Of a stretch of DNA of 64,000 nucleotides, positions 5,970 to 64,000 are shown piece after piece. The stretch lies in contig NC_135254.1 in NCBI RefSeq assembly GCF_964204865.1, positions 23,622,001 through 23,686,000 on the forward strand, written 5' to 3'. Within the stretch, counting starts at the first letter, position 1, and each line of letters opens with the position of its first letter. This DNA comes from Styela clava (Eukaryota). The notes beneath the pieces are model-generated. The model worked only from the letters and a program-made list of their open reading frames with translations. It ran no database searches and had not been told where the DNA came from. Both the position numbers and the translations under genes were made by a program.

Positions 5970-6320
5970 TAGGATAGGATAGGATAGGATTTACATATTT
6001 ATCCCGGGGGAGAGGAAAGCCGATAAGACGGCTTATTCATATGGCGAACCACGGTCTCTCGTCCGGTTACCATTCCAAGTCGGGTATGGGATTAGATTTA
6101 CTGTATTGTTTGTTTTCGGAAGCATGGACTTGGTGGTGGAGGAAGCCGTAACCGACCAGCGGTTACGTGAACCACCCAACGACGGCGAGGAGTCCAGCAA
6201 TCCTCTCGCACATAACCATCCCTGCATGGGATTCGAACCTGCGAACCCACGCAGAGTAGTTAGAGGTGCGGTGGCGAGCGTATTCCTAACGCTTAGCCCG
6301 TTGAGCCACACCGCCGCGCC
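5970..6320 (-). mobile_element. Full-length tRNA-derived SINE
   Basis: Minus strand starts GGCGCGGCGGTGTGGCTCAACGGG (Pol III A box), contains GGTTCGAATCC (B box) and ends in a (CCTAT)n tail. Related fragments lie at about 5660-5750, 14500-14630, 17580-17740, 19080-19260, 26398-26665 and 45590-45650. Confidence 0.85.
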
Positions 6321-6633
6321 AACAGTCAACAACAGTTAAAGAATAAAATAAAATAGAAACACACGATACAAAATAGTGAAATACCTTTTAAATGCAAAAT
6401 AATGAACACTTCAGCAAACTGTGCGGGTCGAAACCATACACTGGTCCGCTCCATGTGCAGTAAAATAAAAAACAATGAATCTTTTCATTTTCTCATATCC
6501 ACTAGGTGACACTGCTTCGATTGTTTATAATTGCTATGCCGATGGGATGGCTCCATTCTTGGAAGTGGAGTAGCCTACAGCTGGGAGTCGGGGCCTTGTT
6601 ATATAACATTATAATACTGTAATATTAGATAAT

Positions 6634-6749: not shown

Positions 6750-8940
6750 AAAAATTTGTTCGAGACATGACTGCATGAACTTGCCAAAAACCAACGGACC
6801 ACCACACAAAAGGATTAAGTTCTAAGAAGTTAAACAGTAAAACGACATATGTAGAAATTCTTTGTTTACACTCGAGTTGTTAATCATAAATGAGAACAAT
6901 AGAGTCTGGCATAAAATGCGGGTCAATTTCGTACCTACAGACCTAGGTGCTAGGCTATACAGTATTATGTGGAATTTATTGTCGCCACGTCTCAGCATGA
7001 TAAATTTAAATTTGTATAAGATGATCTTTTTATTAGAGATGATCCAACGAAGTAACTGTACAAAGCTAATAAACCATAAAAATATGCAGGAACTAGAGAC
7101 AATAGATCTCAGTGGGTTGCCCGAGACTTGTTTCCTGAGCAATGCTGCAATGAGAGTTGGTTGCATCCACGATGTTATGTTAGTCAAACGGAGATATTTT
7201 TCATTTTTCACCAATCATCAAAAGGCCCAGGAAACAAATTTGGTTTACACTTTGGATGCACTTGGACTGCAGAATTAGCTCATCGTTGAGGATGGGTAGT
7301 TTTTGTCTAGGTGCACTGAAAATCATGTACTTGGTCTTTTCCGCATTTACTCTTAGTCTGTTTGCAGTTAGCCAAGATTGAATGTTAGTAGGGTCAGCAT
7401 TAGCTTTTTCAATAAGGTCTGGTAAATATTTCCCTTGTAGGAAAGGGGTGGTGTTGTCAGCAAATAGGATAGCATCGGAGTTTTTGAGTGATTTAGGGAA
7501 GTCATCAATCATAATTAAGAAATATATAGGCCCCATAAGCGACTCTTGAGGCCTCTAACACCTATGTGGTAGAGTTTGGAAAGCAAGATATGATGGTCAA
7601 TGCAAAAAAGGCCAAGAAATAGTCCGAGAGTATAATGGCCTTTTTCAAATCTACCCAGTATTTTACTTTACCTGCGAAGTGGTATGTCCCTTGCGAAAAC
7701 CAAATTGTTGCAGAAAAAACTATTTTGTTCTAAAAAGGTAACTAATCTATTGTACATTACTTTTTCTAAAGTTTTTGAAAAAGACGGCAGTAAGCTAGTC
7801 TGTCTATAGTTTTTGACATTTTTCATGTCTCCCCCTTTGTGAAGCGGTACAACTTTAGCGATTTTAAATTCATCAATAAATTGTCCCGATTGCAAAGAAA
7901 GATTAAAAACATGAGCTAGAGAGAGCATGCAGTTCCACGGCATTGCTCTGATAACCTTACTAATAGAGATTCCATCAAGCCCACAGCCGGTTTTAGGTCT
8001 AAAAGCTCGAATAATAGCTTGTATTTCTGTGGCTGTTACGGGTGATAAAAACATCGAAGAGTTACTTCATTCGTCCATGTATTTCATGAAGTTACCGTCA
8101 TTATCATTAGTGAATTTATCAGACATTCGCTTTCCTATCGTAGAAAAATGTTCATTGAAAAGATCGGCTATCAATACAGGATCACACGTTTCCTTATTTC
8201 CCACAACAAATACTTTTGACAGTTTAGATTTGCATTGACCTAGCAGGGTATTCATTGTTTGCCACGATTTTTTCAGATCATTTTCAGTTTTACTCAAGAG
8301 CGATCTGTAGTAAGAATGCTTTTTGGTCAATATCATTTTTTCATAAGTTTTCTTAATTTCCAAGTATTCCTAGAATATTGCGATTTATTGATGAGGACTT
8401 TTTGTAATGTTTCTGTTTTTCGTGTGAAGTTTTGATAATTCTCTATCAAACCACTTTTTGTTAGTTTTTTGATCAAAATTTGAGAAAAAACTGACATAAC
8501 ATGGCAAGAATAATTTCTAAAGGCATCGCTGGGGTCTGACTCTTCATATACTACAGAAAAATCAATACATTCTAATGACGTCCTAAAATTAGTCATATTG
8601 GTCGGATTAAATGATCTAGAAAATCCGTTTTCTTCGTTTTTAAGTGTTTTTTGTTCTATCGGCATGCACAGCATTACAGGTAGATGATCAGAGATTGCAT
8701 CGGTTAGAATAGCGCTGACAGGTTTTCGATCGTATATGTTTGTCCATATATGATCGAGAATTGCCGCGCTGTTTTCACTTATTCTGGCCGGTTTGGTTAC
8801 AGTGGGATAAAAGAATATTGGTTCATCAACTCAGTCAATTCGTTGACAAAACGGTGCGAGGTGTCCACTAGGTCGTAATTAAGATCACCCATTAGTTTAC
8901 TTTGTCTTTATAGTGTGCATTCATTTATTGAAGTTCCAGA
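6750..8940 (-). mobile_element. Degenerate 5'-truncated LINE (CR1/L2-group) ORF2: APE endonuclease C-terminus plus reverse transcriptase
   Basis: Frameshifted minus-strand peptides: DHIWTN...SDHLPV (APE), GLDGIS...AKVVPLHKGGD...NYR.TSLLPSFSKTLEK (RT), ILFADNTT (degenerate YADD), NRLRVNAEKTKYMIF. Internal deletions and stop codons. Confidence 0.9.
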
Positions 8941-9121: not shown

Positions 9122-18572
<9,451 letters not shown>

Positions 18573-19927
18573 CCCTCAACCCAATCTTTTAATGCCTGAA
18601 ATTTTTTCCAATGCAGAAAAGTTACAGAATTGTGACTGAAAGGGTCCTAATATTATTCTTTTAGAAATCTTTACTTCAAGCAATAAACTAGCTTACTCTT
18701 AATTTTCGTAGAATCACACCAGATGGTACTTTATCACTTTTTCTTCAAATGGACATTTTTTTTTATTTTCATTACCTCCCGAAAATGCTGTGAATTTTCA
18801 GGTGATCCCAAGTTTAACAAGTAAACCTAAATTTGTATACAACTGTCAGGTACTGTGGCATCATTTACTGTGAACTTTCTAGTAAAAATATTTATATCGT
18901 ACTTGAAATGATTCTCATTTTACTTTTCACCATAGAAACTTAGCTTAGTTATTATTACTTTAAGGCGACTAGTGACTTTTGCAAACTTTTTTTATGAAAG
19001 AAATGTTAATATATAATGCAATAATACACGTTTATATTTTGTTGAATAGTAATGTTTTTTTTTGTATTTGGAAATCTTAACTTCGAAGAGCAGAGATAAT
19101 CCTGTAGATATATATGGGTCGTTCGGTCGGAAGCTTTTGGCCCACATATTACATCCATGGCGTGGAGTATATCCAGTGGTGGGGTGGGATTCAGCCGGTT
19201 CACACTGGTTCTATAGAACCGTCTCACGGAATTTTATGAGATCAGCGAACCGGTAAGCATTACTGGTTACTGTCAATGGATTTTTGCATCTTATCTGACA
19301 CCCCGATTCTTGAGATCAAGTAGCTCACATGTTTTTTTTTCAAAATGTGAAATGATCAAGTTTGCACGTAACAGTTATACATTGTGTTAAGTGGAGTATA
19401 CACCTTCAGGTTTTTAAGTTGATTATCTACACTATATAATATATACAGCAATATAGACAATACACAACATCATCAAAATCTTTGATGTTAATTTTGACAT
19501 AATGATGCTTACTTAACGATGATTTCGAAATGTTAATTAGGAGGTAGTTGAAAATAATCAGTTTATCTTCTAAAAAATATGACGTTTTGTAACAGAACCA
19601 GCTGAAAAAGATGACTTTTGTGATGGTACCGGCTTACAAAAAATTTGAATCCGACCACTGCTAATAACGCTTTTGGTTGACGCGGCATCGAGATTTCGTG
19701 GTAATTCTTCGGCAGTGTAAATTAGTTCAATTCGAGTTATATCGTTTGTATACTTAACCTCCTCACTTGTCGAGTCCACTAAAATAGCATGCGGCATAGA
19801 CTCGTAGCCGATAACGTTGTTTTCAAAAATCGGTTGGTTAATATTACACAGAACGTGCGTGAAACATCTTTGCAGCGTTGGATATCATAATTGCTGATTG
19901 TAATAGCACATCTCTACAGATAAGGTA

Positions 19928-20461
19928 ATGTCTACATTCAAATATTTTGGATATGCCAGTAACTTGGCAGATTACAAAGTAGGATTGGAATGTAAATCTT
20001 GTCGATTAGAAAGCATAGCGCGACTTGATGGCTTTACTTTGAGTTTTGGCGAGTATTGTCCGGATTGGTGTGGGGGTTCTGCCACATTAAGAATGGAGAC
20101 AGGATCTGAGGTTTGGGGAGCAGTCTGGGTTATTGACAACTCGGAGATGGATATTTTGGATGAGCAAGAACATGTTACCAGTGGCCAATACAAAGCGGTA
20201 ATCATCGAAGTTGTCGGCAAGGATGATCGAATTATACAATGTCGGGCATACGAACAGATAGACAAGCAGGGCGAACCAAGTAAACCGTCTCCGCAGTATT
20301 TAGCCGTGATTTTGGATGGAGCGAGAAAATGTGGATTGCCAAATGGATATATTGCTAAACTTGAAGCTGTTGAAACAAATGGTAACAGCGAAATAACGGA
20401 ACTCATGGTTGCAATCAGCGAACGACGCAAAGCATTTGGCCTTCTCAGTCCATTATTTTAA
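19928..20461 (+). CDS. GGCT: Gamma-glutamylcyclotransferase, 177 aa, intronless CDS
   Basis: YFGYASNL N-terminal motif, W.GGSATL, VWGAVW, LDEQE (catalytic Glu position), CRAYE, KPSPQYL.VI..GA...GLP..YI.KL..VETNG. Confidence 0.92.
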   Translation: MSTFKYFGYASNLADYKVGLECKSCRLESIARLDGFTLSFGEYCPDWCGGSATLRMETGSEVWGAVWVIDNSEMDILDEQEHVTSGQYKAVIIEVVGKDDRIIQCRAYEQIDKQGEPSKPSPQYLAVILDGARKCGLPNGYIAKLEAVETNGNSEITELMVAISERRKAFGLLSPLF

Positions 20462-24117: not shown

Positions 24118-27100
24118 TTACGAAACTATTCTATCCAACATCCTCATGACTGCTTTGATCTGCTCGCCATTGGCTGTTGCTGTAAATGAAAATATAGCAG
24201 TGCTTGAACACTGGTACATAAGAAAGGACACAATATTGATTTAGCCTATTTCGCGAACACTGAAATGTTTCTTGAATATATTTAATGTATATATATAAGA
24301 TACGAAATTGAAACAAAAACTTACCATAATACTCGCTGGTGAATCCCCACCTGCGCAAAAAATACCATGAATTATTTTGTTGTGCGGGTATCAGGCGTGA
24401 AGAAACCCACAAACTATCTGAGCCAATTTTTAAGTTTTAAAACACTCTACAGTCATAGTGCCACAAAAATGTCGTCTACAGAAAAATTGTGTTGTTATGG
24501 TGCAACGGTGGGCAAACCGCGACTCGCCGGAGTTTTATACAGCTCTTCTCGCTAGCAATAATTATATATTATCCAAATTTAACTAAGAGAAACTGTATCG
24601 TAACAGTTTTAATTCATTAAGCGGTTGAAGAAGCGTTCAACAATGATTAAGAAAAATTATGTTTTAGTATGAAAAGCGTAGAGTGGAATTTAATTTAAAT
24701 CAGTCAAACGACAAATCTTACATCCCAGCGATCAAATGTTTGTTGCTGCGTTGGCGGTTTGTTGTAGCTTTTTTGCGGTTAGTCTCCGCACTGCATTGTC
24801 TACATATCACCAAGACTTACAAACTTCCAGATAAGATGGAAACACACCAGTCAACTACTTCTGATATGTCCTCGCAATATATACTTTACAATATTGTTAT
24901 CATATTATTATTAGTTTGAAAAATTATGCGGCTCTTATACTAAAAAAAATTGCGTACCCCTGTTATAGTGCTTCGTTAAAATATTTTTTGGGGTCATTTC
25001 GTTGGTTGTATTGAAAATACAGGTAGATGATCGAAAAGGCAAATTTTGTAACTATAAATAAGTTGATCACTTTTTATATAAATGAAATTAAATAAAATTC
25101 TGCCACATTTTTTAAATGAAGTTTCAACTCATCTTAGCAGTTATTAATATGCTTCTAAAACCAATTTGCATAAACCAAATACAATAGCATACCAGTCCCA
25201 GCAACCCTGAGGATTTGTAATAAGATTCACTGATGTTCTCGGATAGAGTATGATAATGTTATTCAGAGCTGCAACTTCGTTATAACCCGCATCGTTAGCA
25301 AATGCTTCGGCTACGCTGTCGCTTGTCTTACATCCATGGAAAGCTACGTGCACGCGGCAACCTACAACATATTTAAGAGATCAAATTAGAGCGTTTTCAG
25401 ATCATGTCATATTGTATTTTTTGAACTTTTCGTTATTTTACTTTGTACTCCAAAAAGGAACTTCTGTTAGTTTTTTTGTAACTAGTATCATACGCTAAAT
25501 ATACTACTACTACGTCCCCTCAAAACAGCATGGGCATTGATGTGACTTTCTGGGAGCGCCAGAGGGACATAGCTAATAAAAATATAATAGCCTTTATTTA
25601 TAAACATAGTCTTTCCTGAGGCATATAGAATTTTTGTATGGTTAAATAGTTTTATAAGAAACATGATATATTCAAGAGAGACATGGCATATTGAGGGCGC
25701 TATAATATAAGATGACCGCTCACTTGTGGTTCCACTACTGCAGGACGTTGGCACAAATACCAGCCCGGTCTCATCCATAACAATATCTTTCGGATTTGAT
25801 GAATCCACAAAATCAGCTTGACTAAATTCTAGCAACTGTCCCTTCGGCAAATCATTGCTCTCATAATCCGGCATCTATAAGTCAATAACTATACATATAT
25901 ATTAGCATATTAAAATTATATCCATAAACAATTAGGTAAATCCCTACTGCCCGGGTATCGACGAAGCCCCGCGGATTTTCTATCTTTGTTGACTTGCTCG
26001 ATATCTTGTGGCACATAGGTACATAAGGAGCTTAATATTGCAGAGTAAAATTATAACACTTTTAACAATTACGATCTAACATAATAACATTACGAACATT
26101 TTTAACTAATTTTTTTTTTCCGAATCATGATAACAAATTAATGGACGTGAAATGCGGTTTTATTATCTGTGTCGTTAATTTGCCTTACTCAAAGTCAACC
26201 TGGCAAAATATAACTATTACCTGCAAGTTCCCGCCATAAATATGATTGAGAATATGATATGCCGCTGCAAATCCGCAATTATTTATATCATTGGTGTTTC
26301 TGAAGCCACAGAGTCCTCCTTTGTTCATTGTCGGCTTAACATAATTTATTGTGCAATAAGAAAATTATTTTGGTTGTCATTCTGTCATTCGGATATTGGC
26401 TCGATGGTGTGACGCATCGTGCTAAGCGAAAAGAATACGCTGGTCACCGCACCGCCGTAGGGTGGTTCCGTAAGCCCTGATTGGTTGGGACTTCCTCCAC
26501 CAATCCAGTCCATGTATCTGGAAACAAATGACTGGATAACTAATCCCATACCATACCCGACATGGACTGGTAACCGGGCGAGAGGCCGTGGTTCACCATA
26601 TATGATCAAGTCGTCTCATTAGATTTCCTTACCCATAGGGATAAATGTGTCAATCCCATCCTATCTCAAGAAGCATTGTACAGGCTGTAGAGCAGCAAAA
26701 CGACAAATATGTGCGGCTTTTGAAAATATACTCAATTCGACAAAATACCCTACCTCTATTCATTTTAAAACAAAATGCAACAAAATAGTTTTATAAGACG
26801 TAAATTGTCATTTCTGTAGCTGATAAGTCAATTATTTTGTTGGAAAATCGGAAAACAAAAACACGAGTTTCAAACTGAATCCGACCGGTAGAGTAGGCTT
26901 GAATAGACATAAATTGCATTAATTTCCGGTTTGTAAACAGTTGAATAAAATAGTATATACTCACAAATCCGTTCTGTGATGCAACATCGTATTCTGTTTT
27001 AATATTTGAAGGATTCACATAACTGAGATAAAATTCTTCTGCTTTTTCAACCACCCCTCAAGAAAAATAAAAGCTTGTAAGGCAATATTCATGTACTAAG

Positions 27101-30100
27101 TTTACCACAAGTTGTTTTATTCCTAAATATGTGAATCGAGGGTCTCAAAAATGCGTCATGGAATGCAAGGTGGGGCAAAAGTAGACTAATAGTTATTAAT
27201 CAATATAAATATATATATATATATTTAAATCCTATGATATTATACTAACAATTAAAAACTTGGAATGCTTTACATTTGTCAAACCATATTTTATTTGATT
27301 CGCGCTAACGCTCAGGTTAGACACTACTTGTGTGTATGATTGCCTACCTTTTAAAACTGTTGTGTCTTCTGTGCCGCTGTAAAGGTATACTTTGTCGTTA
27401 TTTAAGTTGGATAAATCTGGAACCGCACCACTTATGACGTAGTCCTGTGCATCAGATTTCAAAGTCGCCACATTTATACCCATCGGCATCGTCATGCAAT
27501 AGGTTGTCGCCAATGTTAGACTGTTTCTCGCACAATAATAAGGACCTAGAATATGAGAGTCATAGTTCCATTTCCAATCATCATTTTTGAGTAAAAAAGA
27601 TCAAAAAGAAGTAAGCAGTAGACAGAATATATATAGTGAAAAATATATATATATGAAAAAAAAAAATGTTTGGTTATCAATGGTTAGAACGACTGACTAC
27701 AGCCCCACTCATCAAAGTAAACTCATTTTTTTGTTCAGTACTGAGATGGGTGTTTCGCAGTCAGCATATTTTTCAATTAGCGATGGGTTTTGTGAAGCTC
27801 TGTGTTAGATATAAGAGACAAATTATATATAATATATATATGAAATTCGAACCACCACACGCAACGAAACAATTGAGCTCGTATACCTCCTGCTATTGCC
27901 CCGGCTCCCATTATATTATCGGATTCAGCAACATGCATTTGAATTGCCATATATCCACCCGAAGACAATCCACTTACTGAAATCGCATTTTTATCCGCTT
28001 TGTATGATCCTTAAAATATAGCAATGTTTGGTTATATCACGTGAATGGTTGGGCCCCGTTTGACGTTACTTAGTGAATTCAGCTCCCTACTAGATAAAAG
28101 CCTGAATCAGTAAAACGTCCGCATTTAACAAAATAGCCCACAAAAAATCGTGTAAAATTTATTTGAGTTTGATGTCGTTCAAAAAAAAGTCTGTTTAAAT
28201 GTATCACGCCTGTTCATTCGGAGGTCAGAACTTAAAATTAGAACTGAAATTACAGTGTATCCTGCTGATGTATAGTTTTGGTTTGACTAACCATTTTTTT
28301 TTGTTTCTTTGGTATGTGTGGTAAACAAAATTAAACCATTTTACCCAAAACTCCATCCTCAATAGAAGACCCTGGCTTTGTTGTTGTTTTCGGTTCAGTA
28401 ACTAAAAATAAATGAAAAAATATGTTTAATAATTATAATCAACAAGAACATCTAAACCAACCTTCTAAATCTAGCCCATATTTACAAACCAATATTTGAA
28501 ACTAGCTTTTTTAGTTATCATACTGAAACGTTCGCTATGATAAAATAAGCCGGAGACTAACTTTTGATAGTTGATGCGTCTGTTGGTACTACGTCAGGAG
28601 TTGTTGTAATCATTGTAGGTGCTGACGATGACGTCATAGCTGTTGAACCCGATGTCAGTCTTTTTACCATGTTCATTATTGCTACTACTTGTTTGCCATT
28701 GTGGTACGCTGCAAAATTATGAAGTTGAAAAAAAGGTATAAAAACCAGGGATGGGGTTTTACTACTACACTTAGGTATATATATATAAATATATAATAGG
28801 TTGAACTTTGAATTTTAAACGGCATTTCAACAAAACTGAATTCAATTTATTCAAAATACTGAGACAATTCATCATTGTTTTTAAACATAGTTTAGTCAGA
28901 GCTTCGAGGTATTACTAACAGTTGGAACTATAAAATCGCATCGCATGATCCATCTAGCAACCTACCGTAGTTTGAGTCGGTGTATCCCCAACTGCAATAA
29001 AAAAAAACACATGACAAAAAGATATGAATAGCTCATGTTTACATAATATATTACGTGCAGATATGCTACCTTTTTAAATGATTGATCCTATATGTAACGG
29101 AATTATCAGATCGAAAAAGCTCATTAAATTACTATTTCGGGTATTTTTTAAAGAATTATGGAAAAATAATTTAGATTTGACTAGATTTAAAATTGAAACA
29201 TCACGAGTTTTAATTAAACATTATTGGATACGTTTCAACTATCTTTGATATTGTACGATATGGCACGTTTCAGGCGACAATCAAATTCAGTAAATCTGGA
29301 ATGATGCAAGACCAAAACAGTGAAATTGGAATTGCAGACCGTATAATTATTCAGTTATACTTGAAGAAAATTATTCTTAAACGCTCTAAACTCTAATTTA
29401 ACAATATGTATCAATATACATGCGTGATAAAACATAAGAAAAATCGATAGGTTTGTGTTTTAACTTACAAGTCCCAACACCCATTGGGGTTGGAGATGGG
29501 AATGACTGACGCTTGAGGATATATAACAATAATATTATTCAATGCCGAAACCTCATTATAACCAGTCTGCATAACATAAGAATCTCCGATGAAGCTATCC
29601 CCTTGTTTACATCCATGTATAGAAACATGTAGACGGCATGCTGGAAAATTCAGAACGTTCAAAATAACCTATATATATATATATATCACCCATTAGCCTA
29701 CATCACTCAACAACTCAAGCTTTTAATACAAAGGAAGTTAGGTTCCATTTAAATGACGGTGACAATTTTGGTATTACATACTATTGAACTGTTAAGGTCG
29801 AATTTTCAGTATTCTCATAGTTATAGGCAATAATAAACAAACATGAGATTTCTAGACACCTAGACAACGTGCTGATATAGTCGATACCATATTGCCTTGG
29901 TATCGAAGAACGCAGTTTCAATCTTGTTACAGCTGTACAGTTGGAAAATTTGCCTTGCATTATAATTAGATAACAAAATTACAATACATTCTGTTGCTCC
30001 AGCGCAGGAATCTGGCACAAAAATATATCCTTTGGAATCCATTCCAATCGATGACGGATTTAGAGTATCTATGAATTCAGATTGGTCAAATGCCAAAACC

Positions 30101-32289
30101 GTGCCTCGCGGAGCAGGAGCTGTCAACGAATAACTGGGAACCTAAATAATAAAGTCTATTTGTAATACTTCATTTCAAATAGTTGTTTATTGGCTACTGA
30201 AATGAGCTCTTGTGAACATTACTCAATACTACGTTCCTAGATTGGCTGATAGAGTAATCTAATCATTTCTCGAGTTATATGTCTGCTGATCAATTACCAT
30301 AACCCTGTTTTGCTATCTTGTCCTTCTTGATGTTGCCCACGTGTGTGAGTGTTGGAAGACAAAAAGAATCATTGGCTACATTTAGTTCAAACTGATTATG
30401 AGGTCGGAGAATTTGTGATTGGACCCCGATTTGTCTTATTGTAACGTATTTCTATGATTCAGGTACCTCGAGGTTTCCGCCGTATATGTGATTAAGAAGA
30501 TGATAAGCAGAATCGTAATCACAGTCATTTATGTAAGTTGGTGTGTATATTCTGTTACACGCTCCACCATTGTCCATTGTGACCTGGGATTTGGAAAAAA
30601 GAATTTAGAATCGAAGAAAGTTTTAATACTACTGGAATACTGCAATCGAATACAAATATTGTCACATAAAAGACTATTATCTCACAAATCCATGCTCTGC
30701 AACAATGTCATACTGTGTCAAAATGTTGGCGGGATTAACAAACTCTTCGTAGAACTCCTGAGCTTTCGTCATCACACCTGAGAATAAAATGTTCTATTAT
30801 GTTATGTTCTTTCAAAAGCTGTCTTTTATGACTGGAAACTTTACCCACCTGGCTTGACGATCGAATCCTCTTTTCCACTAAATAGATAGAGTTTTGAATT
30901 GTACAGATGATCTAGCGAGCTTATTCGACCCAAGTCAGCTTGTGCTTTTGCGTTTTCTATCAAACTTTTTACTTGTATCATATAAGGTGATGACATGCAT
31001 GCTGTCAAAGCAGTTGATAGAGAATCCTGTGCGCAGTTGTATGGACCTGTAATACGGGGGAAAGGGTTTATATAATGACACAGATTGTAAAATCTATTTC
31101 ATCACAATGTACTCTATACGTAATACGCTAGGTAATGTTTTGTAAATTAAACGAAACTAGAAACGGCAGATCTATTCGAAGGTTTGACAAAATCTCCATT
31201 CACTTGGTATAATGGGTTTCTTGTATGTGTAGTTACAATTAAAACAAGATACGATCGCATGCACTACGGAAATGGTTGAGTGTGCTGAAAATGACGTCAG
31301 CATTTGGCCTATCGATTTTCTGAACCGATAAAGCTATATGATGTGCGTTACCCTTACCTCCAGCTACAACTCCAGCACCCATGAAAGTATCAGATTCAAT
31401 GATATGCATTTGTACTGCCATAAATCCTCCCGACGATAATCCACTAACAGAAATTGCAGTAGTATCAATGTTATAGGATCCTCATCGAATAAAAAAAAAA
31501 TTGTTCAACAAATAGCCAATTCAGAATACTTAATTCATATATTGCATTTCATCACTTTTCATATTGCTAAATCGAGTCGACTCCACTACTAACACATCTG
31601 ATTTCCCATTATTCATTACACAAATTGAAAATTTTCTGCTTCATCTTGGTTTCTAATGTTAAATATTTACTTATCACAATTAAAGAGTTTGCTGGCAGAA
31701 AATTGCCCTTCAAAATTTTTGAAAATTAAGCCATTATGGAATATTCTAACCCTGTGGTTTCGAACCTTTTTTGTGGAACGAAACACCAATGAAACATTCC
31801 CGAGGCTCGAATCACCATACAGTTCATTTAATTGTCTTTTATTGATTGTCGAAGTATATAAAACATAAATGTATAAATAGAGGAATCCTCCTAATACTAA
31901 CAGAATGAACTTATAATATTAGTAAATTCAATACACATTTAATTATATAAATTTAAGCAATAAACATAATATAGTAATATAGACTCTGGACTGGACCCCT
32001 GTACTGTACTGGCGGAACGCTGGGATGCAGCGGAACCTTGGTTGAAAACCACTTTTCTAGACGTGTGCGTTTTAAGAACTCAAAACTATTGTTATCAAAT
32101 TGCAATTTAATAATTAAACATGACAATGTCAGTCAGCCTTTGAATCTGCTTCAATTTTGTGCCCTAAACTTAGTTAGGCCTACATCAAAACTTACCAAGC
32201 TTTCCTTCGTTTGAAGCAGCGAAACTTGAATAACAGTAGAGACAAAATATGCAATATACAAGTTGCCATATTCGTATGGAATTCATCAT
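24118..32289 (-). CDS. Secreted two-domain poly(3-hydroxybutyrate) depolymerase-like protein (fungal PhaZ type), about 704 aa, 18 exons (copy B)
   Basis: Signal exon 32289-32196. Domain 1: 31480-31358, 31046-30849, 30777-30686, 30583-30467, 30141-29988, 29640-29469, 28991-28966, 28708-28562. Linker exon 28401-28345. Domain 2: 28009-27887, 27545-27348, 27056-26965, 26334-26221, 25874-25724, 25361-25193, 24350-24325, 24179-24118. All phases fit (2115 nt). Motifs: ISVSGLSSGG(F/Y)MA.QMH, GAG..AGGPY.CA, SG.EDxxV, AEHGF, YIFVP.SC, CRLHVSIHGC.Q, GYNEV.ALNNII..YPQ, NP.GCWD(F/W)WG. Confidence 0.88.
26398..26665 (+). mobile_element. Internally deleted copy of the tRNA-derived SINE, in a depolymerase intron
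   Basis: Colinear with the reverse complement of 5970-6320 (GCTAAGCG..GAATACGCT.G.CACCGCACC, CTTCCTCCACCA, GGTAACCGG, GGGATAAAT...CCTATC). The B-box segment is missing. Confidence 0.75.
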
Positions 32290-34112
32290 TCGGTGTTTGC
32301 AAGATACCACACTAATTTCGTTAAAAAGAAAATTTGCAAAATAGATGTACGTTATTTCGCAAGTGTGTTTAGGCTGTTCAATTCTGATCATCCAGGTAGG
32401 ACGTACGGTATATCAAAAATTTACTCTTGAATAATGTGTAATCAGACATATTACAATATTACCCTGGTTTACTCTTCACAATAAACAGGAAAATTTGCGT
32501 GAAACACGAATAACGGTAAAACTTCATTGATCCCAAGAATTCTGTACGCTACCGGATGTTCGCCATAGCAACCTCAACAATTAAAAAAAAGGCAACAACC
32601 GACAAAGTAACTGACAACAACTGAAAATTAATCCTTGGATACCATGGCGTATCCGTGAGACTTTTTCTTTGAGTTACACATGTTTGAATGGCAGATGATG
32701 ACGCAGATAGTCTAAAAACTCGATCCAAATTTAGAATTTCAGAGACCGTCAATAAACAAAACAATGGGGATTTCCCATTTGCTGATGTTTATTATGGTAT
32801 ATACACTATATACTATAGTATATACCAGGAGTGACCAACCGTTCGACCAAAATCTTCGAAATAGCTCGCGACTGATCGGTAATAAGGTCATACAATAAAA
32901 TGGCTGCTGAATATGCAGATAATTGTAAGTATCCATATTATCTAATCAGAGAAAAACTTCGATACTTCGATACTTATTTTACAATTTCCTCGAAGTGCAA
33001 TCGTCGCTCGCTTGGAATAAAAAAATTGGACATTCTGAATTATGATGCCACTGCTACTGTTGAGAATACAATTTATCACTCTATACAAAACAATAAAATT
33101 TATTTCGGCAGTCTGAAAACACGAAAGGAACAAAACACATAACAGAAATGCCCGGAAAACGAGCAAGACTTATGAATAAAGTTTATAACGCACAATGTAC
33201 GTGATCGTTTACCAAAAGTAACACAACTACACGTTTCATGTGAAAAAAGTGAGTCACACATTCAGGTTGAAAAAAAATGATAATAAAGTTGATAGCGTGT
33301 CGGACACAAACACGTTTCGGCCAAATAAACGCAGTTGGGCAATAATTACATGTGATAAAAGAGAATGCAAACTAAACACAATAAAACAAATAAACTCGAG
33401 ATTCTAGAACACGCATATATACAGATACCAAAATTGATTGATTAAGGGCAGTCCGATTGTTGCACATAAAAACTAACAATAAAAGTTTCCATGGATTTCG
33501 GATGAATTAAAGTCATTCTTTACATTAAATAGTATGTTATGTTGCTTTGCTACTGTTACAGGGTTCTTCATTGTTCTGATCATTTGTTTGTATTTTGTAG
33601 TACTTTCACGCCGATCCGATGGTTCAACATTCTTATTTCTGTCCAGGATTGCAACAACTCTTTTCGGCTCCACCCGGTTATCAGTACAGTTCTGAAATCA
33701 GATTCACAGAGAGAATTATTTTTGTCCGGGTTTCCAAGTTTTAGTCCAAAAGATCTCTTATTCTAGTTTTCCATCGCCCAATATCGGTACCACGTCCGCA
33801 CCCGACGGCGGTCTGATCAGAAATTCTATTCTTTGAGTGAGACAATAACTTTTGCGTACTGCAGAAGTCATTGCAGGATCATTTCTACGTCAAGACACAC
33901 GGTATTCACGGCTAAACTTTCATTTGTTAGATATTAAATAGAATCCATTTGGCTTGCCGAGACTCAAATATTGTAGGCCTATGGATATATCGTATTTTAC
34001 ACATGTCCCACACACATTTTTGGGTATGCTATTAAATTCACTCAACTTCAGACGCGACGTTGCAATGGTACATTTAATAGGAAATGAAAATATGAAAAAG
34101 TGCGGTAAAACA

Positions 34113-37100
34113 TTAAACTATTTTACCCAAAACTCCATCTTCAATAGAAGATTCTGGCTTTGTTGTTGTCTTCGGTTCAACAGCTGAAAATAAATGAAAA
34201 AATCACGTTTTAATAATCAACAAGAACATCGAAACCAACCTTCTAGCTAGCCTATATTTACAAACCAATATTTGAAACTTGTTTTTTTAGTTACGTTATG
34301 CTGTGATAAAATACGCTTAAGACTAACTTTTTATAGATGATGCTTCTGTTGGTACTACCGTAGGAGATGTTGTAATAACTGTAGGTGCGGGCGATGATGT
34401 CATAGTCTTCGAATCAGATGTCAGTCTTTTAACCATGTTCATTATTGCTACTACTTGTTTGCCATTGTGGTACGCTACGAAATTATAGTGTGGAAAAAAA
34501 ACTTGTTATAAATATCAGGGCTGAAGTTTGACTATTAAACTATTAAAAAGTATATATAAAATAAGTTGAACTTTGAATTTTAAACAGCATTTCAACAAAA
34601 CGGAAATCAATTTAATCAACATATTGAAACAAAGCATATCTGTTTTTAAACATAGATTAGAGATTATAATTTTTCCTAACAGTTAGAACTATAAAATCGC
34701 ATCGCTTGATTCAATCTAGCAACCTACCGTAGTTTGAGTCGGTGTATCCCCAACTGCAATCGAAAAAACAAAACAAATGACAATAGATATGAATAGTACA
34801 TGTTTACCTATACTACGTGCAAATCTGCTACATTTTTAAACGATTGATCACGTATGCGGCAGAAATATCAGAAACATCTTATTAATTGCTATTTCGTGTA
34901 CTTTTTAAAGAATTATGGAAAATAAATTAGGATATGTCTACATTGAAAACTGAAACATCACGAGTTTTAATTTAACAAGATCGGATACGTTTCAACTATC
35001 TTTGATACTGTTCGATATTGCACGTTTCATGGACAATTAAATTCAGTAAATCTGGAATGATGCAAGACCAAAAAAGTGGAAAATTTGAATTGCATATCGT
35101 AGAATTATTCAATTATACTTGAAAAAAATTATTTATTCCAAACGTTTGTTGAACTCTTATTTAACAATATGCATACGTGATAAAACATAAACATGTTGAT
35201 AGGATTGTGTTCCAACTTACAAGTCCCAACATCCATCGGGGTTGGAGATGGGAATCACTGACGCTTGAGGATATATGACAATAATATTATTCAATGCCGC
35301 AACCTCATTATAACCAGTCTCCATAACATACGAATCTCCGATGAAGCTATCACCTTGTTCACATCCATGAATAGAAACATGTAGACGGCATGCTGAAAAA
35401 TTCAAAACTTTCAAAATAACCTATATATATATATCACCCATTAGCCTACATCACTCAACAACTCAGGCTTTTAATACAAAGGAAATTAGATTCCAAGAAA
35501 ATGACGGTGGCCGTTTTGGCTACTACTATTAAACTGCTATAGTCAAATTTTCAGTACTCTCTTAGTTAACGTTATAGGTAAAAATAAACGAAACATACTA
35601 TTTTTAGACACCCAGACAAAATGCTGATACAGTCGATACTATATTGCCTCGGTATCGAAGAACGCGGTTTCAATCTTGTTACAGTTGTAAAGCTAGGAAA
35701 TTCGCATTGTATTATGAATAGCTAATGAAATTACAATACTTTCTGTTGCTCCAGTGCAGGAATCTGGCACAAAAATATACCCTTTGGAATCCATTCCAAT
35801 TGATGACGGGTTCAGAGAATTAATGAATTCAGATTGGTCATATGTAAAAACCGTGCCTCGCGGAGCAGGAGCTGTCGACGAATAACTTGGAACCTGAATA
35901 TTAAAGTATCTCCGTAAAACTCAATTGCAAATAGTTGATTATTGCTTACTGAAGTGTAAACTCTTGTGAACATTACTTAATATTACGTAATAGGATGGCT
36001 GATAGAATAGTGTTTTCGTTTTACGAGCTATGTGATTGCAGACTATCGATTACACTCTTTCGCTATATCTTTTCCTCCTTGAATCATGTGTGTCAGTGCT
36101 TGAAGACAAAAAGAATCATTCGCTACATTTTATTCAAACCTGTTTTAAGATCACAGGATTTGTAATGGGATCCTGATTCTTGTAGCACATATATATCTGT
36201 GATTTTCGTACCTCGAGGTTTCCGCCGTATATGTGATTAAGAAGATGATAAGCAGAATCGTAATTACAGTCATTTATGTAAGTTCTGTATATTCTGTTAC
36301 ACGCTCCACCATTGTTCATTGTGACCTGAAATTTGAAATAAGGAATTTAGAATCGAAGAAAGTTTTAATACTACCGGAATACTATACTGCAATCGAATAC
36401 TAATATTGTCACATAAAAGCTATTATCTCACAAATCCATGCTCTGCAACAATGTCATACTGTGTCAAAATGTTGGCGGGATTAACAAACTCTTCGTAGAA
36501 TTCCTGAGCTTTCGTCATCACACCTGGGAATAAAATGTTCTATTATGTTGTGTTCTTTCAAAGGCTGTCTTTTAGGATTGGATACTCTACTCACCTGGCT
36601 TGACGATCGAATCCTCTTTTCCACTAAAAAGATAGAGTCTAGAATTGTACAGATTATTGAGCGAGCTTATTCGACCCAAGTCAGCTTGTGCTTTTGCGTT
36701 TTCTATTAAACTTTTTGCTTGTATCATATATGGTGAAGACATGCATGCTGTCAAAGAATTTGATAGAGAATCATGTGCGCAGTTGTATGGACCTGTAACA
36801 CAGGAGGAAAAGGTTTATATAATGACACAGAAATTCTATTTCATCACAATGTTTTAACTGACTATTCAATGTTTCGTATTAAACTGAGACAAGAAACAAC
36901 AGATCTATACGAAGGTTTGAAATAATGCTCATTCACTGTGTGTGTAGTTACAATTAAAACAATATAGGATGGCATGCACTATGGAAATTGTTGAGCGTGA
37001 TGATAAATGAGGTCAACATTTGGCCTATCGATTTTCTGTACCGTTAAAGCTATTTGATGTGCGCTACCCTTACCTCCAGCTACAACTCCAGCACCCATGA

Positions 37101-37910
37101 AAGTATCAGATTCAATGACATGCAGCTGTACTGCCATAAATCCTCCCGACGAGAATCCACTAACAGAAATTGCAGCAGTATCAATATTGTAGGATCCTCA
37201 TCAAAAAAAAAAAATCAGTCAACAAATAGCTGTATCAGAATACTTAATTCATTATTCATATATTATGTTTCATCACATTTCATATATATTGCTAAATTGA
37301 ATGGTTTCATTACATTTGAACCCACAACAATTGCACCTATGAACTTTTTTTTTTCGGATATTTGAACACATACTAACCCTAACCCATGGATTTAGCACCC
37401 GCAAATAGATTGAACCCGTGAAAATTAACCTATTGTGGATTATTCTAGACAGGTGGTTTAGAACCTTTTTCGTGAAAGAAAACTCCAATGAAACATTCCA
37501 GAGCCTCCATAAAATTCATTTAATGGTCTCTTATTGCAAAAACAAATATATATGTATATATAGAGCAATCCTCCTAATACAGACAAAATGATTCTATAAT
37601 ACTAGCAAACACAATACACATTTATTCATATTTAAATATGAATAATATAGACTCTGGACTGTACTGGCGGAACACTAGGGTTCAGCGGAATATGGACGTG
37701 TTCGTTTACGAACTCAAAACTATTGTTATAAAATTGCAATTGAAGCCTCTGAATAATTAAACATAACAATGTCAGTCAGCCTCTGAATCCCTAAACTTAG
37801 TTACACCAACACTTACCAAGCTTTCCTTCGTTTGGAGCAGCGAAACTTGAATAACAGTAGAGACAAAATATGCAACATAAAAGTTGCCATATTCGTATGA
37901 AATTCATCAT
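34113..37910 (-). CDS. PHB depolymerase-like partial duplicate (copy A): signal peptide, one catalytic domain and a Ser/Thr linker; about 396 aa if it reads through the last donor
   Basis: Exons 37910-37817, 37196-37074, 36792-36595, 36523-36432, 36325-36212, 35893-35740, 35392-35221, 34753-34728, 34474-34328, 34183-34127. All are in frame with intact splice sites. Triad intact (GFSSG, SGKEDSIV, AEHGF). The 3' end is ambiguous: read-through to TAA at 34115-34113, or splicing into 31480. Confidence 0.82.
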
Positions 37911-38527
37911 TCGGTGTTTGCAAGATACCTCCCTAAATCCGTTTAATGAAAATTTGCAAAATAGATGTACGTTATTTCAAGATGTGTTTGGGCTGTTCAA
38001 GTCTGATTATCTAGATAAGAAGTACGATATATATATACATCAAAATATTTACACTCGGATATGTGTAATCAGATATATAACAATATTACCCTGGTTTTGA
38101 CCTCTCCGCAATAAACAGGAAAATTTGCGTGAAACCCGAATATTGGGAAAACTTCATTGGTCCTAGAAATTCTGTACGCTACCAGATATTTGCCATACCA
38201 ACATCAACATTTAAAAAAAGGGCAACAGCCGATAAACCTGACTATTAATCATTGGATACCAGTTCGTATTATTTATTTGTTTGTGAGATATCCGTGAGAC
38301 TTTTTCTTTGCGTTGCACATGTTTGAACGGGAGATGATGACGCAGAGAGTCTAAAAACCCAATCCAAATTTGAGATATTAGAGACCATCGATAAATAAAT
38401 ACAGACAGCACAATGGGGATTTTTCATTCGCTGATGTTTATTATAGTGGCCAACCTGACTTCGACTAAAATCTTCAAAATAGCTCGACTGGTCGGTAAGG
38501 TCATAAACATAAAATGGATACTGAATA

Positions 38528-39344
38528 TCGTCACGCCAATAACCGAATTGCGTAAGTCATTTTTGGCGATTTTGAGTTTTTTTTATAAAATAGGTATTTA
38601 GGTAATGCTGCGCACCTGTCTGTTAACTCAGATTTTATTTTATAAATTCTGAAACCCATAAAGATGGAGATTTAGTATGACATGCACATTTGTGCAATTG
38701 TTTCGTCATAATGAATTATCAATGTTACCGCAGGACTATTGTGACGTCACAAAGGCAAAATAACCTCGGCGAAGTATTTTCGAGTTTTGCATCTCGGATT
38801 CTAGCTTAGCGCGTATTAATTTGAATTTATACTACAGTATAGGAAGACCTGCACTTGTGATATTCACTGTCCGAGTCCAATTCACCTTGGTTAGCTTTTA
38901 TATTGGGTGCATTGCTGTTTTATTCTTTATATTTAATCTTAGTCTTATTTCGGTGGGTGTGCAGAACGTGTTATATTGATGAAATATATATTTTTAAACA
39001 TAAAAAATAATGTAATTGAAACTGATTAGCTATTTTGGGGATTAGACATTGTAGATACTGAGAATTACATTCGTTTTTGGAATGTTTAGTTTTCAGGACT
39101 GGTGCATATAGTAAAGTTGCAAAATTGCGTATGTCCCCAAGTCTTGGACACATTTCTGCCTTAGTCACAGTGTGCCATTATGACGTCACTTAACTGCGTC
39201 ATACAAATTAACTTAAATCCGGCTACGATCAAAAAATTGAACCATTGCAAATTATTGACTCCCAATGGCATAACAATATCATTAGAAGTTCAAAACTCAA
39301 AACTGCTAAAAATGACTTACGCAATTCGGTTATTAGCGTGACGA
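38528..39344. mobile_element. MITE with about 50-bp TIRs, present only upstream of depolymerase copy A
   Basis: TCGTCACGCCAATAACCGAATTGCGTAAGTCATTTTT... and its inverted copy ending at 39344. The paralogous empty site GAATATGCAG is at about 32908. The TSD is either TA/CA or ATAT/ACAT. Confidence 0.85.

Positions 39345-40601: not shown

Positions 40602-64000
<23,399 letters not shown>

Follow-up and report, generated by a model that had tools for sequence, protein, structure and literature searches.

Two adjacent genes for probable secreted type-2 polyhydroxybutyrate depolymerases in the ascidian Styela clava, one with a second copy of the catalytic fold that lacks the catalytic histidine

Esterase genes on the minus strand were analysed in a stretch of 64,000 nucleotides of the Styela clava genome (assembly GCF_964204865.1, contig NC_135254.1, positions 23,622,001 to 23,686,000), which is referred to below as the window and numbered from its first base. 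Two adjacent genes probably encode secreted type-2 polyhydroxybutyrate (PHB) depolymerases built from three copies (A, B and C) of one domain, of which A and B would be active and C most likely non-catalytic. Gene A would give rise to a secreted protein with a single complete catalytic domain. The product of gene B-C would consist of a complete catalytic domain, a disordered linker of approx. 45 residues rich in threonine, serine and proline (T/S/P), and a further copy of the fold with Asn in place of the catalytic His. Most likely, A and B cleave the esters of PHB and polyhydroxyvalerate (PHV) from bacteria that the animal filters from sea water and ingests, with release of 3-hydroxybutyrate. 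Catalysis is expected to proceed by a Ser-Asp-His triad assisted by an oxyanion hole formed by the residue following the nucleophile (Ser+1) and the Cys of an HGC motif. Domain C may have been kept for another role, namely the holding of the polymer chain, and would then mimic bacterial enzymes, in which catalytic domain, linker, and binding domain follow one another.

The three copies occupy positions 24118-37910 and are split by introns; all coordinates of features are compiled in Table 1. Scans for open stretches and for motifs revealed an exon series common to all three units. In each copy the motifs followed the order G-x-S-S-G, GPYxCA, SG-x-ED, His box, HGC, NPxGCWD, WGYT, and a final helix. 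The order of Ser box, Asp, His position, and HGC/GCWD that the original prediction had described for three homologous domains was thus found in A, B, and C. Splice sites were set by reading phase and homology, and short translations across the junctions (about 20 residues) served as a check of the phase. AG/GT boundaries and consistent phases were obtained at all exons (29 of 29; 11 in gene A and 18 in gene B-C). Full-length searches and fold analysis were performed with two database proteins that map to the window exons at or near 100% identity, whereas the window exons themselves were searched singly. The first protein, P0381 (XP_039269886.2), mapped to the exons of A at 97-100% and ended in the short exon at 33691. 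The second, P0454 (XP_077969308.1), mapped to the exons of B and C, and most of the pieces reported were 100% identical. When the 377-Mb genome was searched with a profile, all 15 exon matches fell in the window, and no copy of the family was obtained outside it.

Because the RefSeq models map at or near 100% to the window, the three domains represent two annotated genes with one and two domains, respectively, and are not known as one three-domain protein. The proposed expansion to three domains was therefore confirmed for the locus as a whole, but it is divided between two RefSeq genes. The spliced product of 704 amino acids that had been predicted corresponds to B plus C, which together comprise 2112 nucleotides, or 704 codons from the first Met; RefSeq begins one Met later. 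In the product of gene A, a leader is followed by one complete catalytic domain and then by a tail rich in T/S/P, with the last exon encoding ELY and the stop codon. A hydrophobic leader, which had been described ahead of the domains, was present before A (MMNFIRIWQLL...) and B (MMNSIRIWQLV...) and missing before C. The leaders comprise about 25 residues ending in SSFAA, and residues 2-22 form a helix in the AlphaFold model of P0454. In P0454, the linker covers residues 348-389, where the predicted local distance difference test (pLDDT) score is below 50. Its 57-nt exon opens and closes in phase 1 and leads in frame into C. The linker is probably glycosylated.

Variants of both genes were observed. 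In one RefSeq isoform of gene A (419 amino acids), exon 5 is extended by 24 codons (36325-36140). In another (380 amino acids), an inner acceptor in exon 3 (36792-36747) removes 15 residues (GPYNCAHDSLSNSLT) including a Cys invariant in the family, and proper folding of this isoform is unlikely. An older S. clava protein, P0379, differed from P0454 and the window at three positions in C (N/T, M/I, A/E) and at one position in B (D/A); these differences are presumably polymorphisms between individuals or assemblies.

Assignment of A, B, and C to the extracellular type-2 short-chain-length polyhydroxyalkanoate (PHA) depolymerase family was supported by profile, sequence, and structure searches. 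The NCBIfam model NF050059 (cut-off 280 bits) was matched by the gene A protein with 358.5 bits and by the gene B-C protein with 686.7 bits in two stretches. Single window exons matched NF050059 at positions 3-42, 42-131, and 220-279 in colinear order. The exon with the HGC motif alone matched PDB entry 2D80, the PHB depolymerase of Penicillium funiculosum, with an E-value of 3e-9; P0454 matched 2D80 with 7e-53, and a profile of 13 animal homologues did so over the full length with 6e-77. The original prediction of a PHB depolymerase family of the P. funiculosum type was borne out by these scores. An AlphaFold model of P0454 had a mean pLDDT of 86.5 with both domains folded and the order of secondary-structure elements identical in the two. 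A Foldseek search with this model placed 2D80/2D81 on top (E=7e-33, target template modelling score (TM) 0.90, root-mean-square deviation 1.9 A), with type-1 PHB depolymerases and other esterases scoring far weaker. Since 2D80/2D81 stood on top, this search, which had been set beforehand as the refuting test, did not lead to another esterase family. In the type-2 order, the lipase box precedes the oxyanion-hole box, as described in PMC13642032; accordingly, in three of three domains G-x-S-S-G was carried by domain exon 1 and HGC by domain exon 6.

In 2D80, Ser39, Asp121, and His155 form the triad, while the amides of Ser40 and Cys250 make up the oxyanion hole (PMC5445757). A complete triad and the oxyanion Cys, aligned with S39/D121/H155/C250, were detected in A and B. 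The complete catalytic signature that had been ascribed to all three domains therefore applies to these two copies, and C is without the His. Likewise, the His box AEHGF was found in A and B, while C reads SQNGF. A and B were 41-43% identical to the Amphimedon protein P0157. Regions A (approx. 34100-38528) and B (28316-32914) constitute a tandem duplicate of 4.7 kb with 80% DNA identity including introns, and C resembles them at the protein level only (51% to B). Exons of A and B were 93.3% and introns 81.3% identical; the rates of synonymous (dS) and non-synonymous (dN) substitution were 0.14 and 0.05. The duplicate is recent. The dN/dS ratio was 0.35, and both copies are therefore under purifying selection.

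At the position of the catalytic His, the codon is CAT in A and B and AAC in C, corresponding to two base changes. The Asn was read alike in two RefSeq protein versions (P0379 and P0454). Without this His, the Ser-Asp-His mechanism is not available to C. Judged by these residues, domain C is to be listed as a homologue within the family and not as an enzyme. The same layout as in B-C, i.e., leader, live domain, T/S-rich linker, and second domain, was found in P0318, a protein of 696 amino acids from a transcript-sized contig (2280 nt) of a relative, in which the second domain has Asp at the His position. Domain C and the second domain of P0318 were 64% identical, as compared with 61% for the live domain and its orthologue. 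Out of 54 positions invariant in eight single-domain references, 49 are kept in C, including eight of eight Cys.

In a quick maximum-likelihood tree (IQ-TREE), C paired with the second domain of P0318 (support 100) and A/B with the first (support 98). The position of Ciona outside these pairs was less well supported (styelid clade 93, node joining it to Ciona 81). In this phylogeny, a kind of check that had been proposed originally, the domains cluster with sequences of Ciona and other animals. According to the pairings in this tree, the live/dead duplication predates the split between S. clava and the species of P0318, and the A/B duplication occurred later.

It was considered whether C is a decaying relic without a function of its own, or still a hydrolase using another base. 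Loss of the His is a classic first step of decay, and Ser, Asp, and oxyanion Cys are still present, so that residual chemistry is conceivable. However, the His was lost before S. clava and the species of P0318 separated, and the reading frame of C is nevertheless unbroken; C equals the live domain in conservation, and the invariant positions and Cys named above are kept. With regard to residual activity, the position is taken by Asn or Asp in two lineages, neither of which is a usual general base in this fold. The relic or residual-hydrolase interpretation is therefore held to be rather unlikely; conservation together with the retained invariant positions and all Cys fits a retained function of C better than decay.

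A second tandem protein, P0380 (700 amino acids), was found in another transcript-sized contig. Its two domains are closest to each other (56% identity, support 100), and its N-terminal copy is disabled by exchange of the lipase-box Ser for Ala, of His for Ser, and of HGC for HSC. P0380 represents an independent duplication with a dead N-terminal copy. In the Atlas cluster nearest to P0380, most members are molluscan; this is taken as a lead only. Considering the conservation of C, its place behind a flexible linker, and the independent live and dead tandem in P0380, it is tentatively proposed that C is a non-catalytic polymer-binding module holding the live domain at the surface of the insoluble granule; we give this proposal somewhat less than even chances. 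With slightly more reserve, it is conceivable that animals rebuilt the layout of catalytic domain, linker, and binding domain by duplicating and disabling a domain of their own, at least twice independently, with the C-terminal copy dead in styelids and the N-terminal copy dead in the lineage of P0380, possibly a mollusc.

Two further candidates for two-domain depolymerases were rejected. The second half of P0316 (Corticium candelabrum, 646 amino acids) starts with its own Met and signal peptide, and for this reason P0316 is probably the product of two tandem genes merged by the annotator. P0377 (Artemia franciscana, 543 amino acids) has a partial internal repeat and looks like an artefact of assembly or gene modelling.

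That A and B hydrolyse PHA is what we infer from their place in the family and from the enzyme assays published for other animals. Several points count against the interpretation given at the outset. The Pfam profile PF10503 (Esterase_PHB) remained below threshold (23 bits; HGC exon alone 16.3 bits), and neither a six-frame search of the genome nor P0454 and P0381 yielded a match to it. This says little about function, because PF10503 follows the type-1 order; the low score is probably the reason why RefSeq left the two-domain gene unnamed. Two otherwise invariant Gln have lineage-specific replacements in both C and the second domain of P0318 (HGCxQ to T/S, YPQ to YPR). The transcript structure rests on RefSeq models and one transcript-sized contig of a relative, the published PHB assays concern other animal members and no tunicate enzyme, and a polymer-binding role of C is only what we infer.

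An additional product of the locus, comprising A, B, and C in one protein, was also weighed; in that case, the choice of promoter and splice sites would determine the number of domains. It would arise by splicing of the linker donor of A at 34127 to the acceptor of B exon 2 at 31480, and would be in frame because both sites, which are intact, are of phase 1. The linker exon of A is conserved, and the domain cassette is symmetric (1-1 phase). Nevertheless, the short exon at 33691 is the last one in each of the four RefSeq models of gene A, and B is equipped with a duplicated leader and upstream region of its own. A search open to proteins of up to 1218 amino acids yielded none longer than 703. 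Unsupported by any protein model seen, the join from A to B is improbable, and the locus is treated here as two genes.

The active domains may instead be esterases for another substrate, such as another polyester, an acetylated polysaccharide, or a lipid, with the name carried over from microbes. Feruloyl and acetyl-xylan esterases are among the neighbouring folds in PDB, albeit with weak scores, and the assays stop short of tunicates as stated above. On the other hand, a true PHB depolymerase is by far the nearest of the solved structures, NF050059 is specific and its cut-off was clearly exceeded, and four phylogenetically spread animal members degraded PHB according to PMC13642032. Another substrate is therefore considered unlikely, slightly more so than the three-domain product, and PHB hydrolysis by A and B is preferred.

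That the sequence derives from microbial contamination or from very recent horizontal transfer can be practically dismissed: although the closest non-animal relatives are bacterial (approx. 43% identity), the hypothesis is already refuted by the gene structure, and the domains group with Ciona and other animal sequences in the tree. The locus belongs to the host genome without doubt, because of its 29 GT-AG exons, the host repeat inside an intron, the ATAT1 and AIG2-like genes upstream, its position at 23.6 Mb of a chromosome-scale contig, where ATAT1 and carboxylesterase genes flank it, and the RefSeq models. The arguments from introns, intronic repeat, and ATAT1 linkage that had been raised beforehand thus held.

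Table 1. Features of the depolymerase locus and selected neighbours (window coordinates)
Feature	Position	Strand	Remarks
Unit A	34127-37910	minus	homologous esterase unit
Unit B	28345-32289	minus	homologous esterase unit
Unit C	24118-28009	minus	homologous esterase unit
Gene A	33681-37910	minus	RefSeq LOC120344660, "poly(3-hydroxybutyrate) depolymerase-like", 395 amino acids, 11 exons
Gene A exons 1-6	37910-37817, 37196-37074, 36792-36595, 36523-36432, 36325-36212, 35893-35740	minus	
Gene A exons 7-11	35392-35221, 34753-34728, 34474-34328, 34183-34127, 33691-33681	minus	
Domain A, Ser nucleophile codon	37150-37152	minus	G-F-S-S-G, aligned with 2D80
Domain A, partner residues	Asp 36613-36611, His 36440-36438, Cys 35363-35361	minus	Cys: HGC, oxyanion hole
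Gene A linker exon	34127-34183	minus	intact; phase-1 donor at 34127, joined to 33691 in RefSeq
Gene B-C	24118-32289	minus	RefSeq LOC120344730, "uncharacterized protein", 703 amino acids, 18 exons
Domain B exons, first five	32289/32286-32196, 31480-31358, 31046-30849, 30777-30686, 30583-30467	minus	
Domain B and linker exons, last five	30141-29988, 29640-29469, 28991-28966, 28708-28562, 28401-28345	minus	
Domain B, Ser nucleophile codon	31434-31436	minus	G-L-S-S-G, aligned with 2D80
Domain B, partner residues	Asp 30867-30865, His 30694-30692, Cys 29611-29609	minus	Cys: HGC
B-C linker	28345-28640	minus	T/S/P-rich end of exon 28708-28562 plus 57-nt exon 28401-28345
Domain C exons, first four	28009-27887, 27545-27348, 27056-26965, 26334-26221	minus	
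Domain C exons, last four	25874-25724, 25361-25193, 24350-24325, 24179-24118	minus	stop codon 24120-24118
Domain C, Asn codon (AAC) at catalytic His position	26971-26973	minus	SQNGF; from alignment and codon positions
Domain C, retained residues	Ser 27965-27963, Asp 27366-27364, Cys 25332-25330	minus	Cys: HGC
High-copy interspersed repeat	26380-26640	.	in C intron between exons 27056-26965 and 26334-26221
ATAT1/Mec-17 exon	10855-11340		upstream neighbour

The repeat in the intron of C has a length of approx. 190 bp, and at least 3333 first-look candidates were obtained genome-wide. The 40 candidates scored had approx. 80% identity and were spread over many chromosomes. Open stretches with similar translations were observed at 5983-6336, 14326-14679, and 26385-26609, and were taken as one short interspersed repeat family; the copy in the C intron was used for the genome search.

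Between ATAT1 and the depolymerase genes, an apparently intronless frame of 184 codons (19907-20458, plus strand) resembled AIG2-like/gamma-glutamyl cyclotransferase-like proteins (Pfam AIG2_2, E=8e-23). The minus strand of positions 40605-64000 was occupied by a long array of exons for type-B carboxylesterases (Pfam COesterase) with several domains in a row. One stretch of this array was without the usual context of the GESAG Ser box, and a Pro/Thr-rich stalk with a transmembrane-like segment was observed at 40605-40985. A thyroglobulin-like protein has been reported in S. clava in a 2026 paper (PMC12992692). Amid the carboxylesterase exons, long frames matching Pfam DUF4371, resembling transposases of the hAT/ZBED type, were located at 48424-50126 (plus strand). 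Several long frames at 7204-8830 (minus strand) resembled the endonuclease and reverse transcriptase of retrotransposons without long terminal repeats, and the one such frame scanned (7671-8066) yielded no Pfam match.

Type-2 PHA depolymerases of animals (PHADs) were described by Zeidler et al. (Nat Ecol Evol, August 2026; PMC13642032). Heterologously expressed enzymes from Olavius algarvensis (a gutless worm), Amphimedon queenslandica (a sponge), Lumbricus rubellus (an earthworm), and Folsomia candida (a springtail) released 3-hydroxybutyrate from PHB and PHB/PHV, and 195 homologues were recorded in 66 animal species of nine phyla including chordates (PMC13642032). An animal PHB-digesting enzyme, as postulated originally, has thus been demonstrated for other animal members and not for this species. 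The filter-feeder setting named there likewise stands. The central interpretation is correct but already published, given PMC13642032 and the existing RefSeq entries; S. clava adds one more species to a known family, which is not a discovery. Modestly new is the architecture, in which a mucin-like linker connects a live and a dead version of the catalytic fold in tandem. This tandem is conserved from one ascidian species to another, and an independent case exists elsewhere (P0380). If C binds polymer, this would explain how a single-domain animal family gained a grip on an insoluble substrate, would offer a natural design for engineered enzymes degrading bioplastics, and would correct the label "uncharacterized protein" of LOC120344730.

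With the animal PHADs, the S. clava proteins have in common the type-2 domain, a putative signal peptide, and the triad and oxyanion residues, at approx. 40-45% identity and within one clade. In the main text of PMC13642032, the animal enzymes are single-domain proteins with a fully conserved triad, and the words "tandem" and "multi-domain" do not occur there. By comparison, gene B-C adds a second, His-less domain behind a T/S/P-rich linker. The P. funiculosum enzyme (2D80/2D81) has the same fold (TM 0.90) at 36% identity, the same order of Ser, Asp, His, and oxyanion Cys, and the GCWDW motif, but it is a single-domain protein. At the position of its Trp307, numbered by the 20-residue offset between chain and Ser39, Phe is found in A and B (GCWDF-W) and Trp in C. 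Loss of triad residues with conservation of a hydrolase fold that is reused for binding is known from neuroligins and from the cholinesterase-like domain of thyroglobulin; these belong to another hydrolase family and serve as an analogy only for domain C. Bacterial type-2 short-chain-length PHA depolymerases (Acidovorax, Variovorax, and Comamonas group) have the same catalytic domain (NF050059, approx. 43% identity) and share the logic of catalytic domain, linker, and C-terminal module, in a layout that is analogous and not homologous. In the bacterial enzymes, an Fn3 or similar domain serves as linker, and a small domain dedicated to substrate binding stands at the C-terminus; no substrate-binding module was detected in P0454 with Pfam, which gave weak matches of the alpha/beta-hydrolase type near or below the cut-offs in the N-terminal domain. 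In S. clava B-C, the linker is instead a disordered T/S/P-rich segment, and the place of the C-terminal module is taken by another stretch matching NF050059, a second copy of the catalytic fold without its His.

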